A stretch of DNA of 64,000 nt, taken from assembly GCA_001643675.2 (NCBI GenBank), contig LSRY02000005.1, positions 868,001-932,000 of the forward strand. The letters run 5' to 3'. Under the pieces are notes generated by a model. The model saw only the letters and a program-made list of their open reading frames with translations. It had not been told where the DNA came from and searched no databases. The position numbers and the translations under genes were made by a program. This stretch comes from Monocercomonoides exilis PA203. Lineage: Eukaryota > Protista > Preaxostyla. How positions within the stretch are numbered: position 1 is the first letter of the stretch; each line of letters starts with the position of its first letter. This document shows positions 5,596-56,895 of this stretch, piece after piece.

Positions 5596-5723
5596 TTATT
5601 TGAAACTTTTTAAATATGTGATCCAAACCCAGTACATTGAATTGCCACTGTTAACTTCTAACTTCGCATTAAACAGAATTGATTTATGAAATCTTCAAAA
5701 ACAATCATACCAAAATTTCGTAA

Positions 5724-6341
5724 ATGTTTTTATCGATTTTCATTTTTCATTTTCATTTTATAGTTGCATCAGAATCTATTATTTCTGATTCGATCTCTTC
5801 AGCGCTTGATTGGGACTTAAAATGCAAAGTGTGCTTTTTACTGAAAATTGCTTTTTATTTTAAAGTTATTCTATATATTCTAAAGGAAGAACTTTACCAT
5901 TGCATTGAAGAAAAATTTGATTATTGTTTAAAATCTTGTGCTGGAATGATGAAAAATTTTGTTACGATGTGCGCGTCACCTGTAACTACTGATGACATTT
6001 TTAATTGTCATTCTGAATGTTCTATTTCACATTCAATTCAATGCTTTTCCGCTTTTGGATATAACCTATCACGATTTAATAATTCAACATCAGATGAAAG
6101 TGTGAATGACACAACTTCATTTGCTTTGCAGTGCCCTCTGAAAAATGGTTTCTGGAATGATTTTGCACTTGGGACCACAAATGAAGGGCATAGCAGTCAA
6201 TATCCTTATGGAGCTCCTCTTCTTGTGAAGCCTCGAGACTCAACATCACAACGACGAAAAATGATAAAACAAATAATTGGAAAAGGAGGGAGATTTCAAA
6301 TTCCTGGTTTTAACGAAGGTGGAAAATATCAATTTTATTGA
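5724..6341 (+). CDS. Putative secreted Cys-rich protein; probable in-frame intron 5829-5885
   Basis: Hydrophobic N-terminus MFLSIFIFHFHFIVAS, CX3C motifs (CLKSC, CHSEC), several NxS/T sequons, and a 57-nt GTGTGC...AAAG T-rich segment. Confidence 0.65.
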   Translation: MFLSIFIFHFHFIVASESIISDSISSALDWDLKCKVCFLLKIAFYFKVILYILKEELYHCIEEKFDYCLKSCAGMMKNFVTMCASPVTTDDIFNCHSECSISHSIQCFSAFGYNLSRFNNSTSDESVNDTTSFALQCPLKNGFWNDFALGTTNEGHSSQYPYGAPLLVKPRDSTSQRRKMIKQIIGKGGRFQIPGFNEGGKYQFY

Positions 6342-6463
6342 AATTCCATAACACATCATATTTATAATTTGATGAATAAGCCAAAAGCTCACAATTCATT
6401 AATGAAATACTTTATGGGTCGATCAAAATTGAAGAAGATTAATTTTCATTAAGAAAAGTTCGA

Positions 6464-9400
6464 ATGGAATTAAAACATACTTTTATAAACGATGATTTTC
6501 AACGAATATATGAAGAACTTGTAATTGCAGCAGAAAAATTCAATTTATTATCTTCAAATTATGAAAAAGAAAAATTAAAAATTGAGAAAATAATGAATGA
6601 TAAAATCACTCTGCAAAAAGAAAAGATAATTAACAACGAAACGCTAGAAGATTATTTTCTATATGTTCAATTAAAATTCGAAAAATCGAAGCTATTGAAA
6701 GAAATAGAAATTATTAATTCGTCACAAATTCTTCAAAGTGCAGAAGAGATATCAAAATTGTCCAAAGAATGCCAAAATAAGGATCCATCAATAAAATTAC
6801 CAAAAATTGTTGATGAAATCGAAGGTACCTTTTTTGGAGAAATAGTTGGAGAAGATGGTTTGGATGTTATTAACGATTTATGCTATGGATGCTTAGATAC
6901 AATAATGTCAAAGCCACGAATGAGATCCCTTGATGGAAGGAGAATAACATTATGCGAAGATTGTTTCCAAATTTTATCAAAATTTCATCCACAGTATCAT
7001 TTAGGTCTTAATTGTCATCAAATAGTATTTGATGAAGATTCAATGGTTGCCAAGCGATTGAATATCATCAAAAATAGCTTGAAGAACGCTTATTTTTCTG
7101 CTTCAAAAGAATATCATAACCGTCCTCTTTTTGGATTTCGGTGCTTTTCAAAGAAAAAAGGATTATTATCTTCGATAAATTGGATAAGCTATGGCGCTGC
7201 TTATAATTACGCAAGCAAAATTGCAGTTAATGTCAAAGATAGCTTAGGCGAATCTTGGCCAATAATTATTGGGATATGTATGCCTACGAGGCTTGAATTT
7301 CATATTGCAGAGTTGGCGATGATTATTTTGAGAGCTACAGTTGTTTATATTCCAAACAATGAACCTACTGAGACAATACGAGCAGTTGTTCTTAATTCAA
7401 AAGTGGACGTTGTACTTACGGTTCAGGATACAAAAAGCTGCCTTTCTGGAATTGCAATCAAAGTTATCGATATAACCAATGAGATGCCTACAATTGCAGA
7501 GGGTACAAATCAACATCCAATCGAAAAAATATCAGAAGCGAGACTTGAATGGTTGCCTTCACTTGATGCAAATGAGCCAAAAATTGATGAAAATATACGG
7601 AAAGTCTGCGAGAGAGATTACATCGTTGCTCTAACTGGTACATCTGGAACAACCGCACTTTCTTCGGTTTCGATGAATTTCTCTCGTCACTTCGAATCGA
7701 GATGGATCCAATCAATGACACCTACTGATGCTTTCCTTCCGATTATTCATTTCTTTTTTGTTTCTCCTGTAAATGTCACGGAGCGGGACATTCTGTGGAG
7801 CATCATTTACAACGGTGGTCGAGTGTTTCTTTCTGACAAGCCTCCTCAGCTAATTGAAGACATCAGCATAATACGGCCGAATTGCTTCACAGCCCCTCCG
7901 CTGGTGTGGAAGATGCTTGCGTCTCAGTCTCATTCCAGCCGAGAAATCCACAAGCTGCTTGGACATCGCATAAGAGAAATCGGAATTGGAGGAGCTGTTG
8001 TGGATGAAGAGTTGCTGCATCTTCTCAGAGACGCATATGGCTTGCCTATTGTTGATATGTACGGGACAACAGAACTTGGAGGCATTTTGGCTGATGGAAG
8101 GCCGATGGCTGGAAAGATTGTCAGACTCTTTCCAGAAGATCGGCAAAACTTTGAGTTAATTGAAGGTTCTGAAGGGTGCAGCTCTGAACCTCAATTTGGA
8201 GAGTTGTGCGTGTTGGACGATGGGAAATGGATTGCGACTGGCGACTATGCACAGCGAGTGAGCAAAGACACTTACAAAATAATAGGACGTCTTAGAACAA
8301 TGGCCAAGGCAAGCACTGGAGAGTGGATTGATACAGAAAAACTAGAGGCAATTGCGTGCGAAGTGGAAGGTGTTGAAGCAGCTGCATGCTCAGTCACGCC
8401 AAATGGACACATATTTGTTCTGTGCAATTTGCCTAACGGGAAACATGGGAAAGAGGAAGATAATTGTTCCACATGTTTGAATGACGAAGCATCTTTGCTG
8501 CGAGAAATAAAACTTCGATTAGCAGAAAAAAACGTGAAAAAGGCGCACCACCCAGAATTTGTGGTCATTGATACCGAGAAGTGGACCCCAGAGAATCATT
8601 GCATTACGGAATCGTTCAAAGTGAGGAAGGCGTTTGTTATAAGCAAAAATGGTTTCCAAATAAATAATCGTTCAAGTAAACTCAATTCTGTTGGTAATTT
8701 TGGGAGCAAAATGAAGAAAGTTGACACTGCAAAAGAATTAGAAGACGAAGAGAAAATTTCATCGAAGCAGCTATTTAACTCTTCACCATTTCTGAAAAAG
8801 ATATTGAGCATCGTATTTGTCAGTCAAATTGATTATAACACAGTTCCAATAAAAAAGCTTCGCCTTGAGTCGATTGTTCTTTCGCAGCTTTACTTTATGA
8901 CAATGACTGAATGCGAATCAAAGAAAAAATCTTGCCCGCAACTTTCAGATTCACTTGAAATGACAATCTCACAACTGGTTGATTATTTCGATTGCAAAAA
9001 TGAAGTAGAAAAAAAGCATATTGAATCTTCTAATAAAGAAATGGAATTGCCATCATCTTCGTCCTCTTCCTTACCCTCGTCTTCGTCTTCGTCTTCGATT
9101 GCATCATCTGAAAAAACTTCTGATAATCGTTCAGGCACAGAATCAAAAAGCCAACAGTTGAAGATTGAGCGCCCAGATGATCAATCAAGCAGGGATGCTA
9201 CAGATAACAGTGCAATCATAATTGACAACATGAAAAAAGAAATTGACGACTTTAAACAAATGGATTTCTTTTTGTGGAGAGATAATTCTGACGCTTCTTC
9301 GTCATCTGAATCCATGGATAAGGCGAATTCTATACTTCAGCATCATTTATATCTAACAGGATCTGGCGGTTTTATTGGGAAGCATTTTGCTGAAACAGTT

Positions 9401-10435
9401 GAAAGAAAAGAAGGAGATGTTATCACGAGAATCAAATGGAATGGCGGAGATATCACAAAGTGTGATGTCAAACAATCAAAGCATAGCAAAGGCATAGCGC
9501 ATATGGCATTCTCTGTGAGTGTATATTCTTCTTTTGACGAAATGAAAAAAGAGAGTTTTTGTTTTTTGGAATATCTCGCTAAAATAGCTATTAAAGAGAG
9601 TGGAGCTGGAAAATACAATAACATTCGAGCATTGAATTCTTCATTATCTTCTGCTTCTGCTTCTGCTACTTCTTCTTCAGATAATTTCACCGAGCAATCA
9701 AAAATTGAATCTTCAGATCATCTTCCACTTTCATCTTCTCCTCCTCTTTTGTTCACTTCAACAATAAGTGTATTTGAGTGCTGTCCTGAGGAAGCTTGGC
9801 ATGATCGACTGATTCCAATTACGGAGGAAATAAAAAAGGCATCCAGCTATGCACAGGTGAAAATATTATGCGAATATTGGCTTTCTGCTTTTTCAGAAAA
9901 AACAGGAATGAATGTTAAAGTTGTTCGCTTGCCTGAAATTTCCTTCAATAGCTTAACTGGAGTTGGCAGTCAGACGGATTGGGTTGTTCTTTTTGCGCTT
10001 GGTTGCATCGAGCTACGTTGCGTTCCTGTCGTTTATTATGGGATTGATATGCTTCCTGTAAATGTTGTTTGCGATATTCTTTATTCCATCCTTAATTCAG
10101 AGGGAAAGGGTTTTCAGCTCCAGTCTATAAGAGGTGAAGTAGTTAGCTTAACGATCTATCTCTCTTCTCTGCTGTCTCTTCTTCCCGTGCAGCTTCCATT
10201 TGAAATTATCGGAATTGATGAGTTTATAACTCGACTTAAAGATGAGCCAACAAATTCATTTTATCCTTTTTTGCCTTTTCTTCGAACGATTGGGAAGGTT
10301 GAGGCATTACCTCAATTGCGCAACGTACCACGCTCTGACCCTGACATTTTACCTCCATTTTTCACAGAAGAAACAATGAGAAAGCATGCATCTTGGCTAT
10401 GGAACTTACACGTTTCAAAGCAAAAACTCGGATAG
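6464..10435 (+). CDS. NRPS-like adenylation / carrier / thioester-reductase protein (carboxylic acid reductase-like), intronless, 1323 aa
   Basis: Adenylation motifs GTSGTT, MYGTTE, WIATGD, IIGR...GEWIDTEKLE, WTPEN...SFKVR. Carrier-like segment IKKLRLESIVLSQL...TISQLVDYF. Extended-SDR reductase motifs LYLTGSGGFIG, FTSTISV, YAQVK (YxxxK), VVRLPEI, DMLPVNVV. Confidence 0.85.
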   Translation: MELKHTFINDDFQRIYEELVIAAEKFNLLSSNYEKEKLKIEKIMNDKITLQKEKIINNETLEDYFLYVQLKFEKSKLLKEIEIINSSQILQSAEEISKLSKECQNKDPSIKLPKIVDEIEGTFFGEIVGEDGLDVINDLCYGCLDTIMSKPRMRSLDGRRITLCEDCFQILSKFHPQYHLGLNCHQIVFDEDSMVAKRLNIIKNSLKNAYFSASKEYHNRPLFGFRCFSKKKGLLSSINWISYGAAYNYASKIAVNVKDSLGESWPIIIGICMPTRLEFHIAELAMIILRATVVYIPNNEPTETIRAVVLNSKVDVVLTVQDTKSCLSGIAIKVIDITNEMPTIAEGTNQHPIEKISEARLEWLPSLDANEPKIDENIRKVCERDYIVALTGTSGTTALSSVSMNFSRHFESRWIQSMTPTDAFLPIIHFFFVSPVNVTERDILWSIIYNGGRVFLSDKPPQLIEDISIIRPNCFTAPPLVWKMLASQSHSSREIHKLLGHRIREIGIGGAVVDEELLHLLRDAYGLPIVDMYGTTELGGILADGRPMAGKIVRLFPEDRQNFELIEGSEGCSSEPQFGELCVLDDGKWIATGDYAQRVSKDTYKIIGRLRTMAKASTGEWIDTEKLEAIACEVEGVEAAACSVTPNGHIFVLCNLPNGKHGKEEDNCSTCLNDEASLLREIKLRLAEKNVKKAHHPEFVVIDTEKWTPENHCITESFKVRKAFVISKNGFQINNRSSKLNSVGNFGSKMKKVDTAKELEDEEKISSKQLFNSSPFLKKILSIVFVSQIDYNTVPIKKLRLESIVLSQLYFMTMTECESKKKSCPQLSDSLEMTISQLVDYFDCKNEVEKKHIESSNKEMELPSSSSSSLPSSSSSSSIASSEKTSDNRSGTESKSQQLKIERPDDQSSRDATDNSAIIIDNMKKEIDDFKQMDFFLWRDNSDASSSSESMDKANSILQHHLYLTGSGGFIGKHFAETVERKEGDVITRIKWNGGDITKCDVKQSKHSKGIAHMAFSVSVYSSFDEMKKESFCFLEYLAKIAIKESGAGKYNNIRALNSSLSSASASATSSSDNFTEQSKIESSDHLPLSSSPPLLFTSTISVFECCPEEAWHDRLIPITEEIKKASSYAQVKILCEYWLSAFSEKTGMNVKVVRLPEISFNSLTGVGSQTDWVVLFALGCIELRCVPVVYYGIDMLPVNVVCDILYSILNSEGKGFQLQSIRGEVVSLTIYLSSLLSLLPVQLPFEIIGIDEFITRLKDEPTNSFYPFLPFLRTIGKVEALPQLRNVPRSDPDILPPFFTEETMRKHASWLWNLHVSKQKLG

Positions 10436-10897
10436 TGAGAAAATAGAGTTATTTTTTATTGTTCAATTTATATTTTGCACAGTTTAACAAAATTTGGCAA
10501 GTGCTTATACTGTGTAGTGTAGTTGTTTGTCTTTTTCTTTTGATGTAAATTGAGAATTTTAACAATTATTTATTTGCGTTATGGAGAAATCGGTTTTGAT
10601 ATTCGTTTTTGTGTGGATATTTTTTTCAAGAAGTACAGAAAATCAGATGTTATTTCTATTTGTAAAAAAAATACCTTATAACACAAATAAGGATACAAAA
10701 AAAAAAAGCGAAAAAATTGAAATCAGTATTTGCTCATTCATTGAGAAAGCCTAAATTTTCACTAAAAAAAATAATATAAAATAAAATAAAAATAAAACAT
10801 AGCATTTTCAAAATATCATTGAAACATCATTTTCCGATTAAAAGCCAGTTTAACATTTTGAAATTAAAAATTTATCACAATCAAAACGCAATTTTCA

Positions 10898-12232: not shown

Positions 12233-13291
12233 ATGAATCCAAAAGATAAACATAGAGATGATGAATCTTTTGGATTGACTGAACAAATGGGCAGAAAGCA
12301 AGATGAAACCATTCAAGAAGAGAGTGATGCGGCAAAAACAAAAAAATTACATCTTAGAAAACAGCATATTATTCGCATGGATGCTTACAGCAGACATTTG
12401 AAGTATCTGAAAGATTATTACATTGCAGAAGGAAAACCACTACCAACTTTTAATCAAAAAATGAAGACAGATTTCGATGTTTTGAAGGAAACTTACAGAT
12501 TCATTCGCAACGAAGAAGATGACGCGCTGGATACTTGGGAAACAAGATTAGCACAAACTTATTACAAGAAATTATTTCGGGAATATTGTATTGTTGATCT
12601 TTCTGGATATAAAACTAGAAAAATAGGAATGAGGTGGAGAACCGAAGGTGAAGTGATCGAAGGAAAAGGACAATTTGTATGCGGCGAAAAAAAGTGCTCG
12701 AGAATGCACGATCTGACAAGTTATGAGGTTCCTTTTAGATATGAAGAAGATGGAAAAGTGAAAGATGCTTTAGTGAAAGTCAGATTATGCGATAAGTGTG
12801 CTTTGAAAATGTGGCCAAATTTGAAATCGCAACTTAAAGAAAGAAGAAGGCAAAGAAGGAAAGAAAGAAAACGAATTAAAGAACAAAGTTTGGATAATGA
12901 AAAGCTGAATAATTCAGAAGACGAAGAGACTTCAGATGAAAAGAGGAGACTTGCTGAGGGAAAAGGTGATAAAGATCATGCTCTTTCAAAAGAAAAAAGA
13001 AAACGAGCAAGAGAAGATGAAGAAGATGAAGAAGACGATGCTTATTCAGAGAAAAGCAAACGATCAAAAGTTGTTTCAACAGAAAATGAATTGAGTGACT
13101 TTGACAGCAATAGTGAAACGCATAAAGAACGATATCAAGTTGAAGACAAGAATGATAGAGAAGAAGAAGAGGAGGAAGAGGAAGAAGAGAAAATTAAAGA
13201 TGAAGAAAAGCGTATTTGGTCTGCTCCGGTCGAAAAAATACATACTCGAGAAGATGATTTTTCTTCATATTTTGAGGGAATGTTTTTATAA
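12233..13291 (+). CDS. FRA10AC1: FRA10AC1 family spliceosome-associated protein
   Basis: KTDFDVLKETYRFI, WETRLAQTYYKKLFREYCIVDLSGYK, GMRWRTEGEVIEGKGQFVCG, SYEVPFRYEEDG...LVKVRLCDKC, and C-terminal DDFSSYFEGMFL. Confidence 0.92.
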   Translation: MNPKDKHRDDESFGLTEQMGRKQDETIQEESDAAKTKKLHLRKQHIIRMDAYSRHLKYLKDYYIAEGKPLPTFNQKMKTDFDVLKETYRFIRNEEDDALDTWETRLAQTYYKKLFREYCIVDLSGYKTRKIGMRWRTEGEVIEGKGQFVCGEKKCSRMHDLTSYEVPFRYEEDGKVKDALVKVRLCDKCALKMWPNLKSQLKERRRQRRKERKRIKEQSLDNEKLNNSEDEETSDEKRRLAEGKGDKDHALSKEKRKRAREDEEDEEDDAYSEKSKRSKVVSTENELSDFDSNSETHKERYQVEDKNDREEEEEEEEEEKIKDEEKRIWSAPVEKIHTREDDFSSYFEGMFL

Positions 13292-13536: not shown

Positions 13537-16500
13537 TTAATCGCTGTCGTCATCCGAATCGTCTGAGTCATCGGAGTCATCTGAGCTATCTGAATCATCG
13601 CTGCTGTCTGAGTCTTCAGAATCGTCTGAATCGTCTGACCCTTCCGAATCATCAGAGTCATCCGAATCATCTGAATCGTCTGAATCGTCGCTGTCATCAG
13701 AATCGTCTGAGTCTTCGTCACTGTCATCGTCGGATTCAGAATCAGAGTCGCTCTCTTCTTTTTTGCTTTTCTTCCCCTTTTTGCCTTTTTTATCTTTTTT
13801 GTCTTTTTTGTCTTTTTTAGTATCTTTCTCTTCCTTTTCTTTCTTCGCATCTTCCTTTAATCTTTCTTTTTCTTTCTTTTCAAGTTCAATTGCTTTTGTT
13901 GATCCAATCGTCGGAATGTCTTCATCATCTTCTTCCGCTACAGGAACGGAAAACGGGAGAAAAGATTTTTTTGTACTTATTTCTGGCTTGGCTTTCTTCC
14001 AAGCTTCTGTAGCCATCAGCATTGACAATCCAACACTTAAGTCAACATCACCATCAGTTTCTGATTTTCCATCTTTTGAAGCAGATGATTTGCGAAGCCC
14101 GCCTAACATGGATTCGGTTGCCATCAAAAGGCTAAGTCCAGCAATTCCTTTAATGCCTGCACCTTCCTTCAACTGCTCCTGTTTCATTGCTTGGCTTGCT
14201 AGTAAAAGCATCAGCCCGCCCATTTTTTCTAAAGCTTCTGGTTCAATTGTAGAATCTGGCTGAAGCGAAGATGATGAGCTTTCCGTTTCTTCTTCTTCAA
14301 TTGGCGCAACACCTCTCACTCCCATAAACACAACCTTTGCTCCTTCTTCTGCCCATTTCATTGCTTCTGTTGTTGATGCAAAATTGTCTGTAGTTCTTCC
14401 TTTCTCCAAGCACAGCCACAATTGCTCTGAACCTTTTGCGCTGTGCTTCGCTTTTGATGATGAAGAATTGCTGGACTCCGAAGAAGTTTCTGAATGATCA
14501 ACAGCTTCACAATTCCATGGACGATATGGCTTTCTCTTCATTATTTCCTTCTTTCCTTTCTTCTTATCTTTCCCTTTCTTTGTATCCTTCTCCTTTTCTT
14601 TCTCTTTATCCTCTTCCTCTTCCTTCTTTCCAAGCAAACAGCAACTACATTTAGCCATGCCATATGAAACATTAAACTTCCTCCTTTTTGTCTTCAGATG
14701 CTCTAACTTCATCTTTTTCTTCTTTGCCTCCTTTTTCAACGCTTTCTCTTCCTCTTTCCTCTTCTTCTTCATCGCAGCTATCTCAACAGATGTGTGGCAA
14801 TGACATTTAACCTTGCAAACAGCGCAAATTCCATCTCCTTTTCCACCGCACAGCCAGCACGGAGGACACTCAAAGAGTGACATTTCCAATAAATCTTCGT
14901 CAGTATCCTTTTTGTCAGATGAAGATGTTGCTGATGATGACTTGTCTTCGCTTTTTACAACATCTGAATGCGATCGAGCAAATGATAAGCAAATGCCCTG
15001 TTGAAGACAGTGAATTGAGCTCCACAACTTTTCTGCTTTAGCTTTTTTGCTAAGATTAGATTCTGTTTTAGAGTCAGATTCTGCAGCTGGAGCAGAGGAA
15101 ATGGAGCTTATAAATACTTGATTGAAATTCGACACCTTAAACGCATCACATGTTATACTCTCTGTTTTGAGTGTCTTCTTCACTTCGTCTTCAGATAATG
15201 AATTCACTCCATTCTTTTCAACTTTCTGCTGCCAGCTTTTCAGCCATTCACCGCGATAACACATTGGACGGAATGTAGTATTGTCTTTCGGAGCAGCAGA
15301 TGGTTGAGCAACTTTCCTCCTGAACATTATCTTTACCGAATTTGACTGAGAGTCTGGATAGATAATACGAGGAACACGAGACTTTCCTCGTGATGCTTCG
15401 TTCGCTGGTGCAGCTTCTGATGAAAGCAAGCTCAGAGCTTGAAGAAGGATCTTTTCGTCGCACTTTTCAGTGATAACAATTGAATCGAATGAATAAAGAG
15501 AGCAAGGCATGTCTGTGATTCCGCATGTTGTACGCATCACATTCATTCCAAATGGCATTCCACCAACCACATCATAGAAGGCCAGTGCATGAGAAGACGT
15601 TTCTCCTTTCTTTTTATCTCCTTTTTCTTTTGATCGAAGTGAATATGGCTGTATCTTTGCGTTCTTTCCGAATTTGTTAGCTTTCTTGACAAATTCGTCA
15701 AAGCAGAGCGTTGAGCAGCATTGCAGAACAACACCACCAGGTGCAACTGCATCAGACAGAAGCGAAGTCAAAAAGAATGAATCGTTTCCAACAATAAGCA
15801 CACGATCGCCGCTCGATGAGTTCATCATTGAAAGCATAGACAGCATCACACGTGGTTCAGTCATCACCTGCTTCTTTTCGTTGAACGTTGTTTTTGCTGT
15901 CCACGATTCGTCCATTCCTTTCATATACTCTTTCACCCATTTTGCTGAATGATATTCTTTAAGATTGTTCATAAACTTCTGAGCAAGAGATGGGAACTCA
16001 ACTCTACGTAACAATTTTATTTCATTCTCAATAAGAGCGATTTCTTCTGGTGGCATCTTTGAATCATTTTGATTGTTTTCCTTTACAGTCTTTCTCAGCA
16101 CTTGAAGTTTTGTTTCCACTGATTGGTTGGTTTCATCCAAATAAGTATTTGATTTATTCTCAATATCATTCCAGAATGCAAGAATTTCAAGCTTTTTCAA
16201 TGATTTATTCTTTGGCAGATGGCTAAACGTTTCCGATGCTTCGTTATCTTGGAAGTAGCATGGGAGAATTTCCCATCTAAGCGGACCTTTCTTTGCTTGA
16301 CTTGCATGAGCGACTGGAACAGAAGTTGAAGATGATGAAGAAGTTGGTTTTTCTTCTGATTCGGAATCATCCTTCTTTCCCTTCTTCTTCTTCTTCTTCT
16401 TCTTCAAAGTCACTGATGGATCAATCTCCCAAATAAGCCTTGGATCAAACGGAATCTCTGGATGTTTGAATGCGGAAGTGGAAACGCTTGTTCCCTTCAC

Positions 16501-19500
16501 CTTGTTCTGCAACTTTCCGGTGCTCATGTCGCACTCCATAATTTCATCGTCATCGAAAGGCACTCTCACAACTGATGTTCCTTTGCAATGAAGCAATGGA
16601 ACAAGAATGTCTTTCTTTCCTTTAGAAGCCTTTTTGGACAATGCTTTAAACTCTTCACGTGACACTATTGCAAAGAAAGCAATGCGATTTGATTTATTCT
16701 TTGATGAACCCTCTTCCTCTTCTTCGCACGAGCAGCTCATTGAACAATCATTGAAATCGCACCACTCTTTGCATTCTTCGCATTTGAAGCGATTCTTTTC
16801 ACTTTGAACAAATGAACGAGACATAAGGGGAACTTGGCAAGAAGGACACTCAACAATTCCCATTGTATGGCAAACTGTGCATAATTGGAAGCAAACTGTT
16901 GTAGCTACTCCAAAGAAGTTGTCCTTCCAGCCAGAAATGAAGCCGTCCGTAATCAATGTTGATTCGTCTTTTTGTTTCTTATTCTTAGTAAGTGCTGATG
17001 TTGCATCGCCTTCTGCTGTTTCCGCATCCTCAGCGACTGCAACTTTGCTTTCTTTATCTGTAGTTTCTTTTTGGGCTTTATTGGAAGCATAATCAATTCC
17101 AAAATCGCTTCCGCAAAGTGAAGATTCCAAAGCCATAACACGCTGAGCGCTCGCAACTCCAGATTCTGGAACGCCACCAAGAGAAGCAATGCCAACGATT
17201 GAAGACACGAAATCTCTCAGATGCCCCTTTGCCACGATTGATGGCATCCATGCAAGTCTATTCATGACATTGAGAGCATCTCTGTGCAAGCGAGATAGCA
17301 CAAGTGAGCTTGTTGCCCACAAAAGTGCGTCATCTCCCGTTGGTGCATCAGACTTACCGAATGTTTTCGCATACAATCCAAATTGTGCCTTGTGCAAGTA
17401 AACAATATCTACAACACTTTTCACCAGCTCTGTTCCAAAGAATTCTTCATCTCCATCTCCTTCAGCAGAAGATGCAGAACCTCCGATTGTTGATGAGAGA
17501 ATGCTGAGACAACCAGAAGGAACAACAGCTATCTCAGTCGGATTTGATTCAAATGATACAGAAACAAGAGGATTTCCATTGTCAACGCGGACAACTCTTC
17601 CTCTCTCTCCGCTGCTGTTCTCAATAACATACGCTCCAACCGAAAGACCAATCTCTTTCTCCCATCCAACGATGCCTAAAGAGGCTTCGCCAACAATAAT
17701 TCCTTCAATGGCTTCAGTGAGATTTATTGGTTGTTGAGATTTCGAGATTGGACTTGGAGAAGATGAGCCTTCAGGTGATGCTAATTCAGCTCCTGACACT
17801 TCCTTCAGCCATGGGAATGCCACTTTAATGCATGAAGGAAGACGAATAATTTGAGTAGAAATTTTCTTCTTCACCAGAGACACCCATTCTGCAAATATTT
17901 TTTTAGAATTTTCTGTTTCTGGATGGACAGTTGCATCTTTTCCAGTTATGAGAAGAGAGCGAATCGCATCAAGCGCAACGTTGCAGATGTGTTGTGTAGA
18001 ACTTGCCATTTCAAGTCGGTAAGGAATGGCTAAGATGGTGTGAAGGCATTCCTTAAAGCATTGAAGGCGAATGTTACTGATGTATTTTTTTTTCTCATCT
18101 GCTCCTGAGCTTGCATTATCAAGAGATGACACACTCATTGCAGATGGAGATAGAGAAAGCTCTGGTTCTGGTGAAGGCGGAGTCAACAATGAAAAGGCTG
18201 CATCAGCAGATGCTGAAGAAGAAGATGATGATGATGACGAAGACGAAGAAGAAGCAGAAGCTGACGAAGATACAGAAGAAGATGCTGATGCTGAAGCAGA
18301 TGATGACTTTGAAGATTCATCCTCCAACTTCAACTCTTTCATTCTCGTTTCAAGCCATTGTTTACCAGAATCAATTGTTTCGTCGTCCAAATCGAATAGC
18401 TGTTGCATTTCGGATAAGATTGGTGATGACGAAAGAGAAGAAAACAGTTTCTGTTGCTCCAAATACATTAAAACAACATTGTTCATTGAAGACTCTTCAA
18501 GCGATGACTCCGCTCCTGAAAGAGTGAACAATGTTGAAGACAACAATGCTTTCACCAATTTCATTTGCTCTGTTTCAATCGCTGGCGAAGATTCTGATCC
18601 AATAAGGAACTGGATTCTTCCGAACAAAGGAAGATTTGATAATGTCATAAGAACATCAAGCACATTCAATTTGCATCCACATACGGACACAGTTGAAGCT
18701 GTAGTTGATGGAGAGGCGCAGATAATCAGATGAGGCAAAGCAGTTATTGCAGCTCTTTGAATCCTAACCGTTCCTACGCAAGCAAGTGTGGCTATGTTCG
18801 ATAGGATTTTCGCAGCTGATGCCTCATCGCGGATGAGTGTTGTGCACACACCTTCGATCTCGCAGCTGGCGTACGCAACAAACGACGCCACAGCAAAGGC
18901 AAATGAGTCGTCGATTGGTTCCATCAGTTTCGAAGAAATTGATTCGTGTTGCTCTTCTGCCTTTGACTCTTCGCTTGCTTCTTCACCTTCTGAAAGTTCG
19001 TGCTGAGCAGATCCCTTTTTCACCTTCCACAACGACAAGAATTTGCGCTGTTCAGCTGACTTTTGTGTTTTGTCTCTTTGCATTTCATCTGATGCAATTC
19101 CAATGCAAACGCCAAGACAATCGCAGACGCTCTTTTGAATTGCATCCAGCGAACCATCTTCAACGTCCAGTTCTTCAAACACCCACAACAGCACTACTCT
19201 CAGTAAAGACAAGGCTGAGAGACGAAGCTGATTGAATTCAGGAATAGAGATTGGAGGAAGCGTAATTATTGAAGTGATCAATGATATAAGTTTAGATAAA
19301 TTGAAGGGTGATGAGCTTGCTTTCAGAAGATGCTCAGATGCTTCAAAGCCTCCAACGAAGGTGGATAGCAACGATGAAATGATAGCACAGTTAATGATGT
19401 TTTGTGATGATGGAACTGGATTTGTTTTGAGTGTGTTGACTAAATCAAACAGCTGGATGAGAGTGGAGTAAAGTTCTTGGTGTGCAGATGCTGCCTCCTT

Positions 19501-22500
19501 TGCAAGTTTTCCTGAGAGTTCAATCCCATTAGAGATGCCGCTAATGTCTGCAATGCTCCACATTGTGCTCATCGAACGGCAGAGCTCGCACTGTGACAAA
19601 TCAGCAAACAAACGCGATGGGACTTTGCTTCCTGACTGCTTGAAAACAGACGCCAGCTGGTTCAATGCATAGCATCTCATACGAGCAGCCAAACGAGCAA
19701 ACAGCACGCTTCTCACAAATTGCACACTCGAAACTTCTCTGCAGAAGTTAAGAATTGTTCTGAGCTCATCTTGCTTTTCATCAACAGATTTTGATTTCCA
19801 GTCTTTTGCTCTTTCATTCGCCTCTGCATCTGATTCGCATGATGTGAAGTTAGCATTCTGTGTTACGAGAAAAGCTCTCCGCAAAACTTCATCTCTCAAA
19901 ATCGACAATGAATCCTTTCCTTTTCCTTGAGCACTCATAATGAGTGCGCCTACCGCATGAGTGCACAAGCGCCACATTTGCAGAAGCTCAGGATCGATTG
20001 TCTGTTTTGGTCCAGGTGAGGAAAGCGCTCCCAAGCTGAATGGCGAAGAGGCAAACGACGCAGACGATGGAGACGAGGCCATTTTCTCTACCGATGCCAG
20101 CACATCTTTGTTCCACGAGCATCCAGCGCCGAGCAATGCAGAAAGAGCAGAGACTCCAACTATTCTTCCTTTCTGGCTCATGCCAAGCGGAGGAGCAGCT
20201 TTCATCAATGTGTCAATGACTGACTTTGTGGGTGATGCATCGGTCGATGCAGTAAGCAGAGAAGCAATTGTCGGAGGAAGACGCAACTTTGGATTGGTTG
20301 AAGCATTCAACTTACGACGAGCTGATTCAATCACTTCCACAAGATCACAATCAGACAGAGCGATCAATTCTTGGAACGTTATTGGAAGGTTGCATTGTCC
20401 TTTGCATTCATCCAATGCCTGTGGGAATGTTGGGTCTGCAACTCCGCTCTTCTTTTGTATGAGTTCTTGCTTCTCTTTTTGCTGTCTATTAAGAAGCTCT
20501 CGCACTTCCTTTTCAAGGAGCTGTGCAAATTCTTCGTTGAGACCTTGTTTAAATAAATTGATTGATGTGGCTTCATTTTCTTCATCAACAACCAAAGCAC
20601 ATTGATAGAACGATCCTTTCCACTCCACGCCTGACTTAGCTGCAGCAGCAATCATCTCCATTGTGGCTGGAGGCACCGCAACTGGGCCGGTTGAGCTAGC
20701 TGCCACTCCAACTTTTGGAGGAACAGAAGACGATGATGAGGACGATGAAGATGAGGACGAAGATGATCCTGTATGTGGAGGAAGAACAACCATTCTTCCC
20801 TTTTCGATGTTTCCACCAAAGCTGCGAAGGCCAGCTCTTCTTCGTCTGTTAATAATCGATTCACGGCGGCGTTTCTCTTCCATCAGGCTGATGACGCTGA
20901 ATGCAGAAGAAAACAGTGAAGTAGATGCAGAGGAAACAGATCCTTGTTTGTTTGTCATTCCAACAAGAGTCAATGCCAAGCTGCTTGCAACTGTTGACAT
21001 GTGATGAGGGAACTCTGTAAACCATGTGGCATGAGGACCTTGAATCGGAATAATTGGCATAACAGTAAGTTCAACTCCCCATTCAGCAGCAAGACCAGCA
21101 GTTCCAATCGTCGAAGCGAATTCAACAACCAAAGCAGGGCTCATTACGATTACAGAAGGTGCGGAAGAATCAGCAGCAGGGAAAGATGACTGTGAGTATT
21201 CGTGGAGAAGTGCTCCCAATTCAACTTTGTCGATGCTCAAATTATCTTTGTCATTTGTCTTTGAGTCATCTTTAGTTTTTCCCTTTGACTGCAATGCTTC
21301 TCTTTCCTCCAAAACTTTTGCCCAAGTCGAGTTTTCCCATTCCAAACTTGTTGCCCCCTTGTGAAGAGGAGGAATGATTCCTCCTTTTTGTTGCTTGTTT
21401 TGTGACGTCATCGGCTCTTGGCTATCGTCTCGCTTTGGAACTGCTTCGTATATCTTCAACGAGCATCCTGTTGCTGTCTTGCATTTTTTATTGAAATTAA
21501 TACGATATCCGATAGTTCCAGGAACATAAACAACTCTCTTCCACTCTTCTGATTTGCGATGAGGATGGTCGCTTTCCACCACAATTCCTTCTCCGCTCTC
21601 AGCAACTGCAGACTTCGAGTTGTTCTCGTTTAGCTGTGCGGCCTGTCTGAGATGGAGCACCTCTTCGTTCGTCACCTGCTCTCCCCAGCTGCTCAGCTGG
21701 TTGCCTCCAGTTGCCTCAAACAATGTTTGGATAGCTTCGTTGAACTCACGCAGCAAATCCAAAACGGGGCGAAGAAAGATTTCAGCAACTGTAGATGATG
21801 CGCGCATGGCATAGATCACAGACAGAAGTGGGCGGCAAAGATGGCAGACAAGCGTGTCGCGAAGAGCGTTCATAACTTCTTCTCTTTGTGGATCTGTCAT
21901 TGAGGCGATTCCCTTCAATTCCACTTTAACTGACTGCAAGAGCTCGATTGATGATGTCAAAACTCTCTTTGCATAAATAACAAAGTATGGAAACATTCCA
22001 TTAAATGAAACATCCAAATCTTCGACAGTTGTTTTTGATTCTGCAATTGCAGAAGCAACTGCCGATGAAGATGAGGAAACAGATGCTGACGAATCTTTCT
22101 TTGATTTTGGCTGCTCTTCTTTTCCTTCTAAATCATCCCCTGAATTTTCGTCTGCATTCTTTGGTGCTTTCGGAATAACTCTGAAAAAGAGCGAAAATAG
22201 CTTCTTCTGCAGCACTTCCAGAATAGGGCCAACTGTTGTCTTAACATCAGCATTATTCTCTGATTCATAACTGTTCTTGCTTTGTTCCGACGATGAAGCT
22301 GCTTCCTTTGAATTCCTCGAGCACACATCGGAGATTGTTTCTTTCACTTTGCGCTCTCCGTATTCCTTCTCCACATTTATCAATGCATTCCAAACTTGGA
22401 TCAATTGGTCGCGTCCGCGCCACCCCAACCAGCGAACAAGCGGATGCCTTGTAGACAGAATAGTTCGAATTCTGTCTGTTCTTGGATCCGATAGCATAGA

Positions 22501-25500
22501 AAGCAGAAGGGCAGACAGACGGGAAGAAGAACCAGACGAAGAAAACACTCGAGCTGACAATGAAACGTTTGACTCGTTTGTGGAATGGTCCTTTGAAGAT
22601 GTTGATGACATGGAGATTCCTGTATTCAGGCTTTTCGTTCTACCGCTGACAATGTCCGCAAGCGATGCAAGTGCTTTCGATGGTGTGTTGAATTCGAGTG
22701 TAGTGATCAGCGATGAATCAATTGCAGCATCAATAATCTGCGATGAAGCGCCAGCAATAACGCATTTGGGCATCATTTTTTTGCATTCGCTTTTCTCGCA
22801 ATCTTTTGCTTTTATTTCAGATAAAATCTTCTCTCGCAATTCTGAAAAGCAGGTGATAACATTTTCAATTGCCAAAACAAGTCGTGATTTATGAGGATCA
22901 ACAAAGCCACAAGTTGCGCTGCTCATTCCAGAAAGCGAAAGGAATCGGAGATTCAGCTGCACCACAGAAAGAACGGATAAGAGAGATGCGCATATTCCTT
23001 GTGCGACTGTTGTTCCTCCGGAGCAAACAGCACTAACTGTCTGACTCACGTTTTTAAGGAGATTGACTGATGTGGCCATCTCTCTAAACATGTACTCAGT
23101 CAGGTCAACACCGAATGGAATAAACAAAGGCAGTATCTTTCCTTCTCCAGGTCCGCTGATAACACTTGAAGATGATTCGCTTGAACCTCCCAATGCATTT
23201 GCTCCGTTGTTAGTCGTGCCAAACCAACAGGAAGCGCTCAACTCTCCAATTGAGCTCAGAATGGACGAAGCCAAAAGAAGACGGATGGAATCTTCCTTCC
23301 AATTTGGCACGTTGCTTGTGTTATCTGAAGCAGAAGTAGACTTTACGCATTCGCAAGCAGTCTTAATGGCAGCATCAAACAAGTCGCGACTGTTCATCCG
23401 TTGCTGAGTCTTTGAGGAACATGTGCATTTTCCCTCTTCTTTGCACTCGTCTTGATTCAAGAGCCAAGGCTGGCTCTGCACAAAAGCAGGGACTGCTGTT
23501 CCCGTTTGATTAATCACTTTCATAATATTGTGCATTATTTTTCCTTTGTTCTCTTCATCTTCTGACGCAACTGGTGTATCTGACAAAAGAGATGTTCGGG
23601 AACTAACCATCACAAAGTTGTTGTGAGATCTATCATAGCACAAGGCTCCTTCATCCATTCCATCAACGATTTTCCATCCAAGTGAAGTGCATGGCTTTCC
23701 TGTTTCCTCCTCTTCCTCATCATCATCATCATCATCATCATCATCAGATTCCTCTCCATCTCTTGGTTCTTTTGCAAGAGCATCTTTAAGCTTTGCATAG
23801 ACCGAATTTTCACATGCTTTTGAATCTAAATCTGTCACATCAGACACATTGCACCCACAAAGGCACCGCAGAATGTGTCTCTTCTTCTTTTTATTCTTTT
23901 TTTCTTCGTCACTTAAAACTTCGCTACTCAAATCAAACTGGATCATCTCTGCAACTACCAATTTCTTTATAGCTTTTTCATCATCTTCTTCAATCGATAA
24001 AGAAGCATGTGAATCGCTGCTTCCTTTGCATATCATTCCAATTGTTGCTCCGTTGCAAAACACTCTTCCGCTAAAGAGATCGCCAATAGTCACATAATTG
24101 TTGGAAACAACAGCAGAAGATGTTGACGACGCATCGATAAGCCTCATGCTGTGCCCTTGCTGATGGAGCTGGTTTGTTCTTCCACCCATGGCGCATGACT
24201 CACACATAATAAACTCCTCTTTGTCACCTGAATAAATCTGGTTGCATCGATCGCAAATAAATAAGCGCCCGTTTGGAGAAATCTCTTCGTCGCACAGTTT
24301 GCATTTCACGCTTTTCAACGCACTTTGTCTTGATAATGCCATGCTTCCTCTGACGTCGATAAGATGACGCCTAACCAGCATCCAGTGGTTTGCAGGGTCA
24401 AATACGTGCACAACAATAAAAGGCACCTCCTCGTTCGAACTTGCACTGACAGGATCCATTCTCAGTGTGCCAATGTGATACACGTACTGTCCATCGCTCT
24501 TCATCACTGCGAATGCAAAGTGGCCCATCTTGCGGATCTGCTTGCCGCTAATGCAGCCTGTCTTCTTTGATTTCGATCCTTCTTCGTCCTCTGATTCGTT
24601 GTCAGTGTCTTCTTCGTATTCCTCAATCCCTGACACGTCTTCTTCTTCGTCTTCTTTCTCATCCTTATCCTCTTTGTTCGTTTCTGATTCAAGCTTGATA
24701 GAAACAGCTGCCGTAGCTTTCTTGACAGGAGTGTCAAAAAGAGATGCTTTCTTCTTCTTTTCTTTCTTCTTCTTTTTTAATGAACTGTCAGAGTCATCAT
24801 CTGAATTTGATTCGTCATCAGATGAATCATCATCATCATCATCATCACTTTCATCTTCGCTGTCATCATCGTCTTCGCTATCGTCTTCTTTTTTTGAATC
24901 GTCTTCATCATTCTTTTTGTCCGATTCTTCAGAAGTTTTTCCTTCGTCTTGTGCTTTCTTTGCTGCAGAGTCTGCTCTGCCTCTTCCACTTTCCTTTCCG
25001 CCAAGATAATACCTCAAAAAGGGATAGTCCCCGCACAGCTCACCAACAACTTTGAACAGGTCAGGTAATTCTATTGTTTCTCCTTCGATCACTTTTGCTT
25101 GCTCTTCTCCTTCAGACGCGTTCTCTTGAAGATTCACTTTGCTCAAAAGTGCCAACTGCTCGGAGTCATAAACAGAAATAACACACTGCCGTTCAGAATT
25201 GTTCTCTCCGTTTTCTTTTGTATTCGCTTTATTGTTCTTTTGACGAACTTTTCCTGTTGTTGTCCTGTGCACCACGCAGATTCTCCGCTGAGGATAAGTC
25301 AAAGCAAATAGTCCACATTCTGATCCTATTTTCCTCTCTGATGTGGTGCTTCCCTCAAATAGATCGATGCCTCCTTCAGACTCTCCTTCTTTGTCGTCCT
25401 CCTTCCTTGCTGTATACTCGCGTCCAGCAAGTGTGCCTTCTTGGCCTGTACCGAAACGTCTGATAACAGCATCTCCACACAACACAAATAAATATTTTCC

Positions 25501-26591
25501 ATCGCAGGCAACTGAAAGAATTTCTCTTTGCTTTAATTTTCCTTTTTCTTCTTTTGCTCTCTGGCTTCCGGATTCTTTATGTTGTAGAATAGCACCCGAT
25601 GAAAACGCCAATTCTGCGGATGTCCACTCAGATTTTGCTTTCGTGTCAAAAGGATAAGATCCATGCTGTTTTGTTAATTTTGAAATGCTTTCCCAAATTC
25701 CCCCTATCTCAATTACGCTTTTCTTTTGGCTTTTTTCATTGACTATCTTTGTTCCTTGCTCTTGAGATGACGATTGAGTTGACATTAACAGTTCGTTTGC
25801 TGCTTCGAGAAGATATTGAACTCGTCCACTTGAAATTCCAAGAGCAACAAGAACAGCGACAGCATCCAAGCAATCCAGATTGCCTGTTGTTGCGCTTTGA
25901 TTCTTGCGACGCTCATGGCGAAACCATGTAACCATCTCACCAATCCCTTTATAAACGCTGTACATTTGAGGTGAAAGTGATTGTGATGATAGAGAACCAA
26001 CGGCTTTGTACATTGATTGAAGAACAGTTTGGCCAACTTCTGGAGATGCAATGCTTAATGCTTTTGCAAGGCCACAACATAGATTCAAAGCCATTTCAAC
26101 CGAACTTTGCGTTCCCTGACCTTGGGGCATTGTTGGTTCAACAACGAGTTTTGGAGGCTCTTCGATCTAAGTTCAAAAAATCATTCCAAAATATTCAAAA
26201 GAAAATGAATCATAAAGAACAATGATAGCAACAAGAAAATAATGCAAACTGTTTCTTCCATTTCTTTTCTCGTTTGAACGCCAATTCGACTTAATAATTC
26301 GGATCTCATTGAATATAACTCCGAAAATTGAGCCATTTCAGGTGCTTGTGCAATCAAAGCCTTGCTAAATTCTTCTGTTCCTATATATTTCCCGATTAAA
26401 TAACTAAAATTCTCGAAATCCTTTGCGGAAAATGCTTGTTGATTTGGCATTAAATCCACTTCGCTTTCGCTCACAGCACGAAATGGACTTGTCTCAAATT
26501 TTTCACGAAGAAAATCTTCATCGAAAATGCTCTCTGTTCCAATTGAGAGCAATGATTTTTCATCGTTAACGTTACTTGAAATATTACCCAT
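13537..26591 (-). CDS. Giant (~4323 aa) HECTD4/ZZEF1-like scaffold with ZZ finger, CUB-like, PIMT-like and UBR-box-like regions; no HECT domain
   Basis: Exon 26591-26250, phase-0 intron 26249-26167, exon 26166-13537. MGNISS start; LSVACDGKYLFV...RFGTGQEGTLAG; CKLC...CDRC...CESC...HQQGH; VESDHPH...EWGVELTV. The CDS is secure; the family label is from recall. Confidence 0.75.
13540..13752 (-). repeat. Coding 9-nt-period tandem repeat encoding an (Asp-Ser-Asp)n tail
   Basis: Plus-strand units gaatcgtct / gagtcatcg / gaatcatct repeated about 20 times; the protein ends DSDDSDDSD. Confidence 0.9.
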
Positions 26592-26948: not shown

Positions 26949-29256
26949 TTATCGATATAATTTCATCCCCTGAAGGCAATATTGCCACCTTGTGCTATCA
27001 TCGATTTGTCTGAATCTGTCTTCTTCATCTGGAGAAATAGCAAGGCAATATATGATATCCTGAACAGCACGTTTAGCTCTCTCAGCAAATAATCCGAAAT
27101 CTTTGAGCGTAATTGACTTGTCTGCATCTGGATGGAACAGCAGAGGAGCAAATGTGTATGCAAGTTGCGTGACATTCGAAAGAAATTGTGCTTCGGCTTT
27201 GTCAAATGCCATCTGTAAAAGCAAATTGTTAATAAAAAAAAATTGAGATTTATGAAAAAGGAAACATTAAAATGTGATAATGAAATAATTGGCTTAATGT
27301 GATGAATAACAAAAGGTTTCAAACTCTTCTCAGAAAGCGAATAAGATATTTCAAAGTGTAAAAATTCATGTTTGGTGTGTGTGTCTCTATGATCGTGCAT
27401 GTGTTGATTGCAGACTCTGAGTTTCTGATCCTTTTGTGAAGTGCAGCTGGAATCAATGGCTCAGACAGCCCGCGCAGCCAGTTCTTCAGCAGCGTCGCGA
27501 TCGTCGTGGCAGGCACAGCGCCCGAGTCGTCTGCGGTATTTGCGTCTTTCCACTCAGAAACGAAGTAATTCCCCGTGTTTGCCATCTTCTTTGCATGTGC
27601 AACTTGAGAAGGATTGCCAGAAATCGCAAAGAGAGCAGTGATGTCTTTGGATGTCGCATTCGGCGGAACAACAATTGAATTGCAAAGAACTGCTAAAATC
27701 TGAGGAATAATCATTGTCTTCAAAGGGATATGAAGTGGAGGCACAAGCTGACGTGGTTCAAACGAGTTGTCAGAAATGTATGAGGATGCAGGCTCATTCT
27801 CGTTGCGAGCTTCTCCTCTTGCTTCAACGCCAGAAGACTCAATTTGCAGAGCTGAATCAGTATTCTCTCCATCGACTTTCTTTTCTTCCGCCTCTTCCTC
27901 TGCGTGTGTCTGCTCTTTTTCCTCAATTGGCGCAGTTGGTGGTGCTTCGCTAGGCGGAAGAGGGCGGCGATGTTTGAGTCGCTTGTGCTGAGTGCTGTCG
28001 CCAGATGACAACGTTTCTTTAGATGACTCTGTCAGATTGTCACCCTCATCCATTGAACTGTTATCTCTTTCTTTTTGTGCCTCTTCAAATGCCTCTGCTT
28101 CTCTTTTGCTTCTTTCTTCTTCTTCCGCTTGCCTCATTGCTTTTTCTCTCTCCGCTCTAAGCTTCTCTTTTCTTTCTCTTTGTTCGACCGCCATCTTCAT
28201 TGCTTTCTCTTCATCATATAATTCTTCAGTGTAAATCTGCCAACAATATATTTCATCAAGCCAAGTATCAAAAACTCGAGGTATTAAAACATTTATCGGT
28301 AATACATCTAATTGTGCATCCATGTTTAAACTTATCGGTTTATCCTCTTTTATTGAATTGCTGATCTCTGCATTATCTTTTGAATCCTTTTTGGATTTAT
28401 TATTCAAATTCTGTGCATCGGATGAACCTCCAGCAACAACACGGGGATCAACGCTCACACTCCATCCTCCAATTGAAAGTCCAGTGTAAATTTTTGATAA
28501 ACTCATGGTTAATAAAAAATACTTTAATGAGACAAATGGGGTTCGAAATTGGGAATTTGACGACCCCGTACCAGAAGAAGCGCTTTTTGTATTTGAATTA
28601 TCTTGACCTTTTAGAATTCTTCGTTCAACTTGTTGTTGCGTATTTATAGCATTAATTAGGCAAGGCTCAAGTTTAGGAGTTGGTAGAATGCATGATAGTA
28701 AAAGCGACATTAATCTCCAACCAATCAAAGTGGACTCTGTACTTGGGTTGTCAGAAACTTGCCTTAAAATTTGGCAAATGGATTCATCCCGCAGTTCAGG
28801 TATTTTGACAGCTCTTGTTATAAACATATTCACATGCTGTTTGATTGAAAATTTTGCTGGAGCATCTTTCATAATGCACAGTAAATCCATGAATTGAGCT
28901 TTTCCTTCACTTTTCAAAAACTCATGGTTCAAATCAGGCATTCTTAAAAGAGCTTTTTTTAAAGGCTCGGTTGAATGAGTCAATAGTTTTGCAAGGGGAA
29001 TAACCTTATTAAATCCTTTTGTATGTGTCGTAAATAATTCTTTGGCGAAATTCGTAAAGGAATGTTCGCTAACCTTTTCATCAAGAGATTCGTCAATTTC
29101 TCCTAAAAAAATAATATCTGGTCTTCCAACAAAAATGCTATCTTCTATTGTTCGTCTTCCTGGCTGATCAGAAAATACAATACTTGGAGCTATATATGCG
29201 ATATCTTTCACCGGAACTTCTATGTTCGGTGAAAGCGAAAATGTTTCTTGTTCCAT
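26949..29256 (-). CDS. MyTH4 + RhoGAP-like protein (ARHGAP39-type architecture, no WW domains seen), 2 exons
   Basis: MyTH4: HSTEPLKKALL, PELRDESICQILRQVSDNP...GWRLMSLL. RhoGAP: IPQILAVL, IATLLKNWLRGLSEPLIP, NFYTLKYLIRFL, LAYTFAPLLF. Phase-0 intron 27324-27213. Confidence 0.88.
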
Positions 29257-47259: not shown

Positions 47260-47290
<31 letters not shown>

Positions 47291-56627: not shown

Positions 56628-56895
56628 CAAAAATCCTGAGAGTAACAAATATTACAAAATATCACAAAAGTCTCTTCGAAATAAAGAATAAAAAAGCATA
56701 CATCCAAAATAGAAGAAATAGAATAAAAAACAACGGATATCCAAAAAATCTTAAAGCTATCAGATAAACTTAAACTTGCTGTTAACTTAAATTTAAAATG
56801 AAAGTAATCATTAACAAAAAATTAAGGTTTTATAATTTTTACAGATCGAATAGGTTGTAAGGCATTTAACAATAATTTACAATTTTTATCCGGTT

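Follow-up and report, generated by a model that had tools for sequence, protein, structure and literature searches.

In a 64,000-nucleotide stretch of the genome of the oxymonad Monocercomonoides exilis PA203 (contig LSRY02000005.1, positions 868,001 to 932,000 of the forward strand; hereafter the window, numbered from its first letter), we find a gene for a protein in which an adenylation (A) domain, a carrier-like (T) segment and a terminal thioester reductase (R) domain follow half of a zinc finger. Structure models firmly establish the A and R folds as being of the carboxylic acid reductase (CAR) and terminal-reductase kind. The most likely function of the protein is the predicted ATP- and NAD(P)H-dependent reduction of a carboxylic acid via a pantetheinyl thioester, to which we give about an even chance. 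On comparison with its relatives, the gene is a fast-evolving member of a protist family in which a ZZ-type zinc finger precedes A, T and R (ZZ-A-T-R). It is the remodelling of the oxymonad copies that appears as the unusual part: a P-loop without the PKG triplet, a deletion at A6, a halved finger, a carrier segment unrecognized by Pfam and a short Rossmann half.

Domain folds and catalytic residues

Residues 120-860 and 755-1323 were folded separately, using alignments of 65 and 69 relatives, and the subsequent structure searches aligned the large domains only. With the A model (mean predicted local distance difference test score, pLDDT, 78.4) as query, Foldseek places CAR A domains in the first eight ranks of the PDB (E 1.9e-28 to 1.4e-25), luciferases and FadD10 trailing at E ~1e-22. 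Over residues 203-734, both subdomains included, many ANL enzymes reach a VIA-align Z of ~29. The sequence itself points the same way: Pfam AMP-binding matches residues 237-555 with 85.7 bits, the best solved structure is the CAR chain 5mso (E 1.1e-8), and the best NCBIfam family is the carboxylic acid reductase family NF041592. Among the 40 A-T columns that are conserved in at least 85% of relatives, 32 are retained (34 in a paralogue described below). The kept positions include YGTTE at 533, TGD at 592, Arg609, Lys615, Glu628, Thr715 and Lys719, and A10 has the form seen in acyl-activating enzymes, T..SFKVRK. Losses of A-domain columns cluster in the P-loop, which has TSGTT, lacks GxPK and carries extra residues, while the other ANL signature motifs, YGTTE and TGD, are present.

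For the R model, pLDDT exceeds 90 in the core. Its highest VIA-align Z scores are to the terminal R domain of the myxalamid synthase MxaA (27.6) and a Streptomyces polyketide synthase (PKS) thioreductase (27.3), and it also matches the didomains of peptidyl carrier protein and R domain (PCP-R) of CARs (26.9-25.7) and the R domain of the Neurospora CAR (25.9); sugar epimerases and dehydratases reach at most 21.6. TIGR01746, the thioester reductase domain, matches with 51.7 bits, and the second half is recognized by Pfam NAD_binding_4 (residues 1094-1205, 42 bits). The three glycines of the dinucleotide-binding motif (G966/G969/G972) and the catalytic S1099, Y1129 and K1133 are invariant in the 69-sequence alignment. 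Glu1137, Arg1155 and Asp1172 are retained as well, and the Arg991 position is occupied by Lys.

Much of this had been anticipated in the initial annotation, which was made from the letters alone. The matches above bear out both the A-T-R order and the assignment of the A domain to the CAR/acyl-CoA-synthetase type, the strings that it quoted from this domain (NRPLFG..WISY, GEWI..EKLE, WTPEN) are present, and GxxGxxG and YxxxK are intact, as it had said (TGSGGFIG at 965-972; Y1129/K1133). Its ranges for the A domain (7080-8650, residues 206-729) and the R domain (9345-10410) agree with the fold matches over 203-734 and 913-1319. Of the checks that it had proposed, the Foldseek comparison with CAR structures came out as predicted, and the profile search did so in part: AMP-binding and NAD_binding_4 matched and PP-binding was unmatched in Pfam.

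The segment between the A and R domains is probably a true carrier, and it is the weakest part of the assignment. The serine at 8870-8872 singled out by the initial annotation corresponds to Ser803 (motif LRLES); 64 of 64 aligned relatives have their carrier serine in the same column, and Pfam recognizes PP-binding at the carrier position in 40 of 65 relatives. In both models a helix starts at Ser803, one of a group of four to five (pLDDT 52-76), and the block around this serine, LESIVL.Q.YF, is identical in the paralogue. Language-model look-alikes of the segment in the atlas belong to PP-binding clusters in 26 of 30 cases, with top scores of 0.90-0.91, a level reached by chance in 4-10%. We call the segment carrier-like because of its position, its register, its predicted helices and these look-alikes.

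A genome search returned the paralogue, which the exhaustive protein search had not; it encodes 1503 residues on contig 6 (~1360731-1365242; L005:2731-7242) and is 32% identical over residues 133-1316, a distance at which synonymous sites are saturated. The half zinc finger, the enlarged P-loop, the LES motif and the shortened R domain all recur in it, and its low-complexity inserts are longer. All four cysteines of the finger, which is modelled with a pLDDT of 83-89, are kept in the paralogue, the second zinc site is likewise lost there, and the two copies have the string R.RSLE.G in common. The enlarged, PKG-less P-loop is common to the paralogue and to a protein of the oxymonad Streblomastix strix; in both, a Lys sits two residues before the end of the enlarged loop, and in the gene under study there is Asn405. 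Identity between the paralogues amounts to 43-49% in the A domain, 50% in the R core and 42% in the finger, drops to 17-27% in the linkers, and in 25-residue windows is best around YGTTE. Because identity peaks in the catalytic parts and is lowest in the linkers, the comparison argues for continued constraint on an enzyme-like function, altered P-loop included.

Relatives, carrier chemistry and candidate functions

The exhaustive search gave 680 relatives at E <=0.001, only three of them below 1e-30. The closest is a 182-residue fragment from Streblomastix strix (40% identity), followed by unnamed proteins of ~1070 residues at ~30% identity; a word-based protein search turned up nothing beyond the shorter public model of this gene and a rotifer protein. 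Source names carried by the relatives include "ATP/NADPH-dependent carboxylic acid reductase" (Pelomyxa schiedti), "car" (Symbiodinium) and "ZZ-type domain-containing protein" (Prymnesium parvum), and other named relatives come from Willaertia magna, Protostelium, Acytostelium, Thecamonas, Apiculatamorpha and the rotifer Didymodactylos; on the bacterial side there are a Myxococcales metagenome-assembled genome (MAG) and IMG entries named "FadD9". The A-T-R architecture, usually with a ZZ-type finger in front, is present in dictyostelids among many protists, and the finger stands directly before the A domain in many relatives (8 of 65 by Pfam ZZ, 38 of 91 by cysteine pattern). Judged from this distribution, zinc finger-A-T-R is an old and widespread protist architecture, and the family is eukaryote-wide.

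We built quick trees with FastTree (101 rows) and IQ-TREE (LG+G4, 34 rows), in which placement is weak. In both, the two M. exilis proteins pair with full support, and the stem leading to them is very long (1.73-1.78 changes per column). The pair adjoins the P0004-6/P0018 group with support of 90-94, which is not decisive. Within this group, P0005 and P0006 have also lost the second zinc site and carry the same string, R.RSLE.G. P0152, which belongs to the cluster of P0006, comes from a compact ENA metagenome contig of eukaryote-like character (L016:8001-11201) whose genes for deoxyhypusine synthase, ATP11, L7Ae and BCNT are of eukaryotic type. The initial annotation had thought of a laterally acquired gene or a novel fusion, neither of which these data support. 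Since many protists have this architecture, the nearest neighbours in the trees are eukaryotic or on a eukaryote-like contig, and the gene has a paralogue as well as an orthologue in Streblomastix, we find no indication that the fusion is new or that it was recently transferred from bacteria.

The same annotation had considered such a protein unexpected in a lineage not known for carrier-protein chemistry, a premise that the genome does not support. Seven giant open reading frames (ORFs; 1935-5325 residues) on contigs 28 (two), 23, 31, 2 and 5 (two) hold 11 PP-binding matches, and six of the seven hold 8 ketosynthase domains; condensation domains of nonribosomal peptide synthetases (NRPSs) were absent from the genome search. 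By their domain content, the giant ketosynthase ORFs are type I PKS or fatty acid synthase (FAS) megasynthases. The genome also encodes an AASDHPPT-type phosphopantetheinyl transferase of 349 residues on contig 51 (L006:2720-3769; AASDHPPT_N 84.8 bits, ACPS 29.1 bits), the only ACPS-family match in the genome search. The search with NAD_binding_4 additionally picked up a 473-residue protein resembling 3-beta-hydroxysteroid dehydrogenase/NSDHL on contig 2 (161.5 bits; L007:3810-5231).

FAAL-PKS proteins of Preaxostyla are listed in a 2026 survey (PMC12820801). For M. exilis, the genome paper reported neither synthesis nor degradation of short-chain fatty acids (PMC6759080), and the carrier-chemistry side of M. 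exilis metabolism is therefore under-described. A Preaxostyla genomics paper contained none of the lipid, PKS, carrier and aldehyde terms for which it was searched, and in the literature we found nothing that links Monocercomonoides, Pelomyxa or the ZZ finger to carboxylic acid reductases, and nothing on this gene or the zinc-finger family. M. exilis is the model eukaryote without mitochondria, and the combination of two CAR-type genes that look expressed with six PKS/FAS megasynthases and a transferase points to a carrier-based lipid or aldehyde metabolism that is missing from its published maps. The enzyme class itself is well known, the finding overturns nothing, and the gene is neither foreign nor unexpected in M. 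exilis. The oxymonad copies are natural variants that show which "invariant" positions of ANL enzymes and reductases can change under constraint.

How would acid reduction proceed in such a protein? The A domain would use ATP to activate a carboxylic acid, presumably a fatty or other non-amino acid, as acyl-AMP. The acyl group would then pass to a phosphopantetheine arm on Ser803, putatively installed by the AASDHPPT-type transferase, and the R domain, with NAD(P)H and the Ser1099-Tyr1129-Lys1133 triad, would release an aldehyde, or an alcohol after a second reduction. That the remodelled P-loop supports adenylation is something we only infer. Mutagenesis of the P-loop in some ANL enzymes lowered activity and did not abolish it, and the change in this loop alone is therefore no proof of inactivity.

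A number of observations weigh against this mechanism. The score for NF041592 is 59.9 bits against an equivalog cut-off of 1300, and the protein is therefore CAR-like and not a CAR equivalog. In the A domain, the P-loop is without the PKG triplet that nearly all of the first 80 listed relatives retain, has Asn405 where relatives have Lys, and is modelled with a pLDDT below 50 at 396-400; between GELCV and TGD, both paralogues have an A6 deletion of ~20 residues that includes a 97%-conserved Tyr. Pfam finds no PP-binding in the whole protein or in the excised carrier segment, nor does NCBIfam find a carrier on the segment; hhalign of the two oxymonad carriers against the carriers of 36 relatives gives a probability of 1.1% (E 0.048), with Ser aligned to Ser, and the motif is LES and not DS. 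In the R domain, the first Rossmann half is short by ~45 residues, Ser1031 stands in place of a 100%-conserved Asn, and 17 of 28 correctly aligned conserved columns are retained, four further columns at the start of the alignment being misaligned and left out of the 28.

The main rival explanation, which we regard as rather doubtful, is that the protein is a pseudoenzyme or has been repurposed: adenylation or carrier loading would have been lost in favour of a binding, scaffolding or regulatory role, perhaps via the finger, or only the R domain would still work. The altered P-loop, the A6 deletion, the half finger, the carrier missed by Pfam, the short Rossmann half and the Asn-to-Ser change at 1031 would fit this explanation, as would the very long stem branch. 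However, both paralogues, though only 32% identical by now, keep every directly catalytic residue that can be checked; conservation is highest at the catalytic motifs, and even the altered P-loop is conserved between the copies. The weak statistical support for the carrier might also suit an enzyme that works in two steps without one, in which the A domain makes acyl-AMP or acyl-CoA, the R domain reduces the free thioester in the manner of fatty acyl-CoA reductases, and the middle is a linker. We consider this unlikely. The A10 and A8 motifs do resemble those of acyl-CoA synthetases, but Ser803 is in register with the carrier serine of 64 of 64 relatives, opens a predicted helix and belongs to a block that both paralogues conserve, the look-alikes in the atlas are of the PP-binding kind, and the R fold is closest to terminal reductases that are fed by carriers.

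Origin and pathway offer two further alternatives. Recent lateral acquisition from bacteria is very improbable: bacterial relatives exist, such as that of the Myxococcales MAG, but the nearest neighbours in the trees are eukaryotic or lie on a eukaryote-like contig, and among them P0005 and P0006 have the same half finger and R.RSLE.G. The gene also has eukaryotic surroundings, shares its Ser-rich low-complexity inserts with the paralogue of the same genome, and is accompanied by that paralogue and by the Streblomastix orthologue. We find it hardly credible that the protein is a Lys2-type alpha-aminoadipate reductase for lysine synthesis, which has the same A-T-R order: the TIGR03443 match is weak, covers only the R part and scores 17.5 bits against a cut-off of 1030.1, and the A domain matches CAR/acyl-activating rather than amino-acid-activating types. 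The readings of lateral transfer, of a Lys2 enzyme and of separate genes were rejected. Returning to carrier-bound acid reduction, there is a slim chance that the family zinc finger recruits the enzymes to a protein or peptide partner and that the PKG-less P-loop of the oxymonads marks a changed activation, possibly the acceptance of an acyl group pre-activated by a fatty-acid-primed PKS/FAS and not canonical use of ATP.

Gene model, transcription and neighbourhood

The gene occupies positions 6464-10435 of the forward strand as a single ORF with an ATG start, 1323 codons and a stop, and without an intron. Chance can be ruled out, because 1323 codons stay open in DNA of 35-39% GC, because the first 130 codons, which are AT-rich, would stay open by chance with P ~1e-6, and because a full-length paralogue exists at 32% identity. 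RNA evidence comes from metatranscriptome contigs of four runs of one study. These tile 6772-10533 with zero mismatches, gaps or splice joints, and none lies on the flanks at 5600-6770 and 10556-10732. A uniform carry-over of DNA would have covered the flanks too. Tiling is interrupted only at Ser-codon repeats, which also attract chimeric contigs. At 9494-9847, chimeric contigs and a spike in depth (up to 341) arise from Ser/Ala-codon repeats common to other transcripts, and the spike is therefore not higher expression of that part. The contigs support a transcribed gene and, as the initial annotation had said, one without introns; they cannot prove that a single transcript spans A to R, nor do they fix the start codon.

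The public protein model P0001 (1051 residues) starts at Met273 (7280), which cuts off the start of the A domain. RNA contigs extend 500 bases upstream of that start, and P0001 looks too short. Together with the open first 130 codons and with the comparable open N-terminal extension of the paralogue (18.5% identity), they make the long ORF starting at 6464 the better gene model. The features along it are collected in Table 1.

Table 1. Features of the predicted protein and their positions in the window.
Feature	Residues	Position	Strand	Remarks
N-terminal extension	1-130	6464..6853	+	Lys/Glu-rich; no family match; start codon not settled; RNA contigs start only at 6772
Half ZZ-type zinc finger	137-174	6872..6985	+	Cys140, Cys143, Cys164, Cys167; second zinc site of the ZZ fold lost
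ANL adenylation domain, CAR/acyl-activating type	203-734	7070..8665	+	Pfam, Foldseek, VIA-align
Remodelled P-loop	393-406	7640..7681	+	TSGTT kept, ~4 extra residues, PKG replaced
A10 catalytic lysine	Lys719	8618..8620	+	Column 100% Lys among relatives
Carrier-like (T) segment	771-858	8774..9037	+	Ser803 (8870-8872) at start of predicted helix
Ser-rich low-complexity linker	859-912	9038..9199	+	pLDDT <50; 27% identity to paralogue
Thioester reductase (R) domain	913-1319	9200..10420	+	VIA-align, TIGR01746, invariant columns
TGSGGFIG (GxxGxxG)	965-972	9356-9379	+	
Ser/Ala-rich low-complexity insertion within R domain	1045-1093	9596..9742	+	
R triad	Ser1099; Tyr1129; Lys1133	9758-9760; 9848-9850; 9860-9862	+	YAQVK at 1129-1133

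Neighbouring ORFs are eukaryotic, with Fra10Ac1 at 12233-13291 and a MyTH4-RhoGAP protein at 27319-29256 (-). As these are ordinary eukaryotic genes, the gene lies in eukaryotic nuclear DNA. The ORF directly upstream (5724-6341) has neither a family match nor RNA cover, and for this reason we did not join it to the gene. Elsewhere in the window, uninterrupted minus-strand ORFs of 4197, 3140 and 2356 codons run over 13537-26130, 39736-49158 and 56896-63966, and no Pfam match at E 0.001 was obtained for the ORFs at 35030-37369 (+), 49671-52424 (-) and 53271-56648 (-) (779, 917 and 1125 residues).

Comparison with known systems

Among characterized enzymes, the protein is best compared with CARs (EC 1.2.1.30; Segniliparus rugosus, Nocardia iowensis, Mycobacterium marinum and Neurospora crassa, as well as mycobacterial FadD9), whose mechanism and domain features are described in PMC5396282. 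These have the same A-T-R order, provide the best fold matches for the M. exilis A domain and, as PCP-R, are among the top matches for its R domain. Both share rGxTE, TGD, the A10 lysine, the serine at the carrier position, GxxGxxG and Ser-Tyr-Lys, at an overall identity of ~15-18%. Unlike CARs, the M. exilis protein has an N-terminal extension, a zinc finger and low-complexity inserts, and it differs from them in its PKG-less P-loop, A6 deletion and shortened Rossmann half.

Closer in layout are the protist ZZ-A-T-R proteins of Pelomyxa schiedti (KAH3744291.1), Prymnesium parvum (KAL1504527.1), Protostelium, Acytostelium, Thecamonas, Willaertia and Symbiodinium and of Didymodactylos, which have the same four parts. 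In contrast to the M. exilis protein, these relatives keep a canonical TSGSTGxPKG, GGDS and a full-length R domain, and the NAD_binding_4 score of the rotifer protein is 181.8 bits as opposed to 42 in M. exilis. P0004, P0005 and P0006 (~1070 residues, ~30% identity) are the nearest neighbours of the M. exilis pair in both trees. Similar to M. exilis, P0005 and P0006 have a half finger with R.RSLE.G and a residue other than Asp before the carrier serine. PKG, however, is intact in all three (P0006 has a one-residue insertion), and their R domain retains the strand ending in the GD motif, which the M. exilis protein does not.

Finally, the terminal thioester reductases of PKS and NRPS systems (MxaA, 4u7w/4w4t; Streptomyces coelicolor, 8v1x) show the highest Z scores to the M. 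exilis R domain, 27.6 to 27.1. In those systems the R domain ends an assembly line, whereas in M. exilis it follows a single A-T unit.

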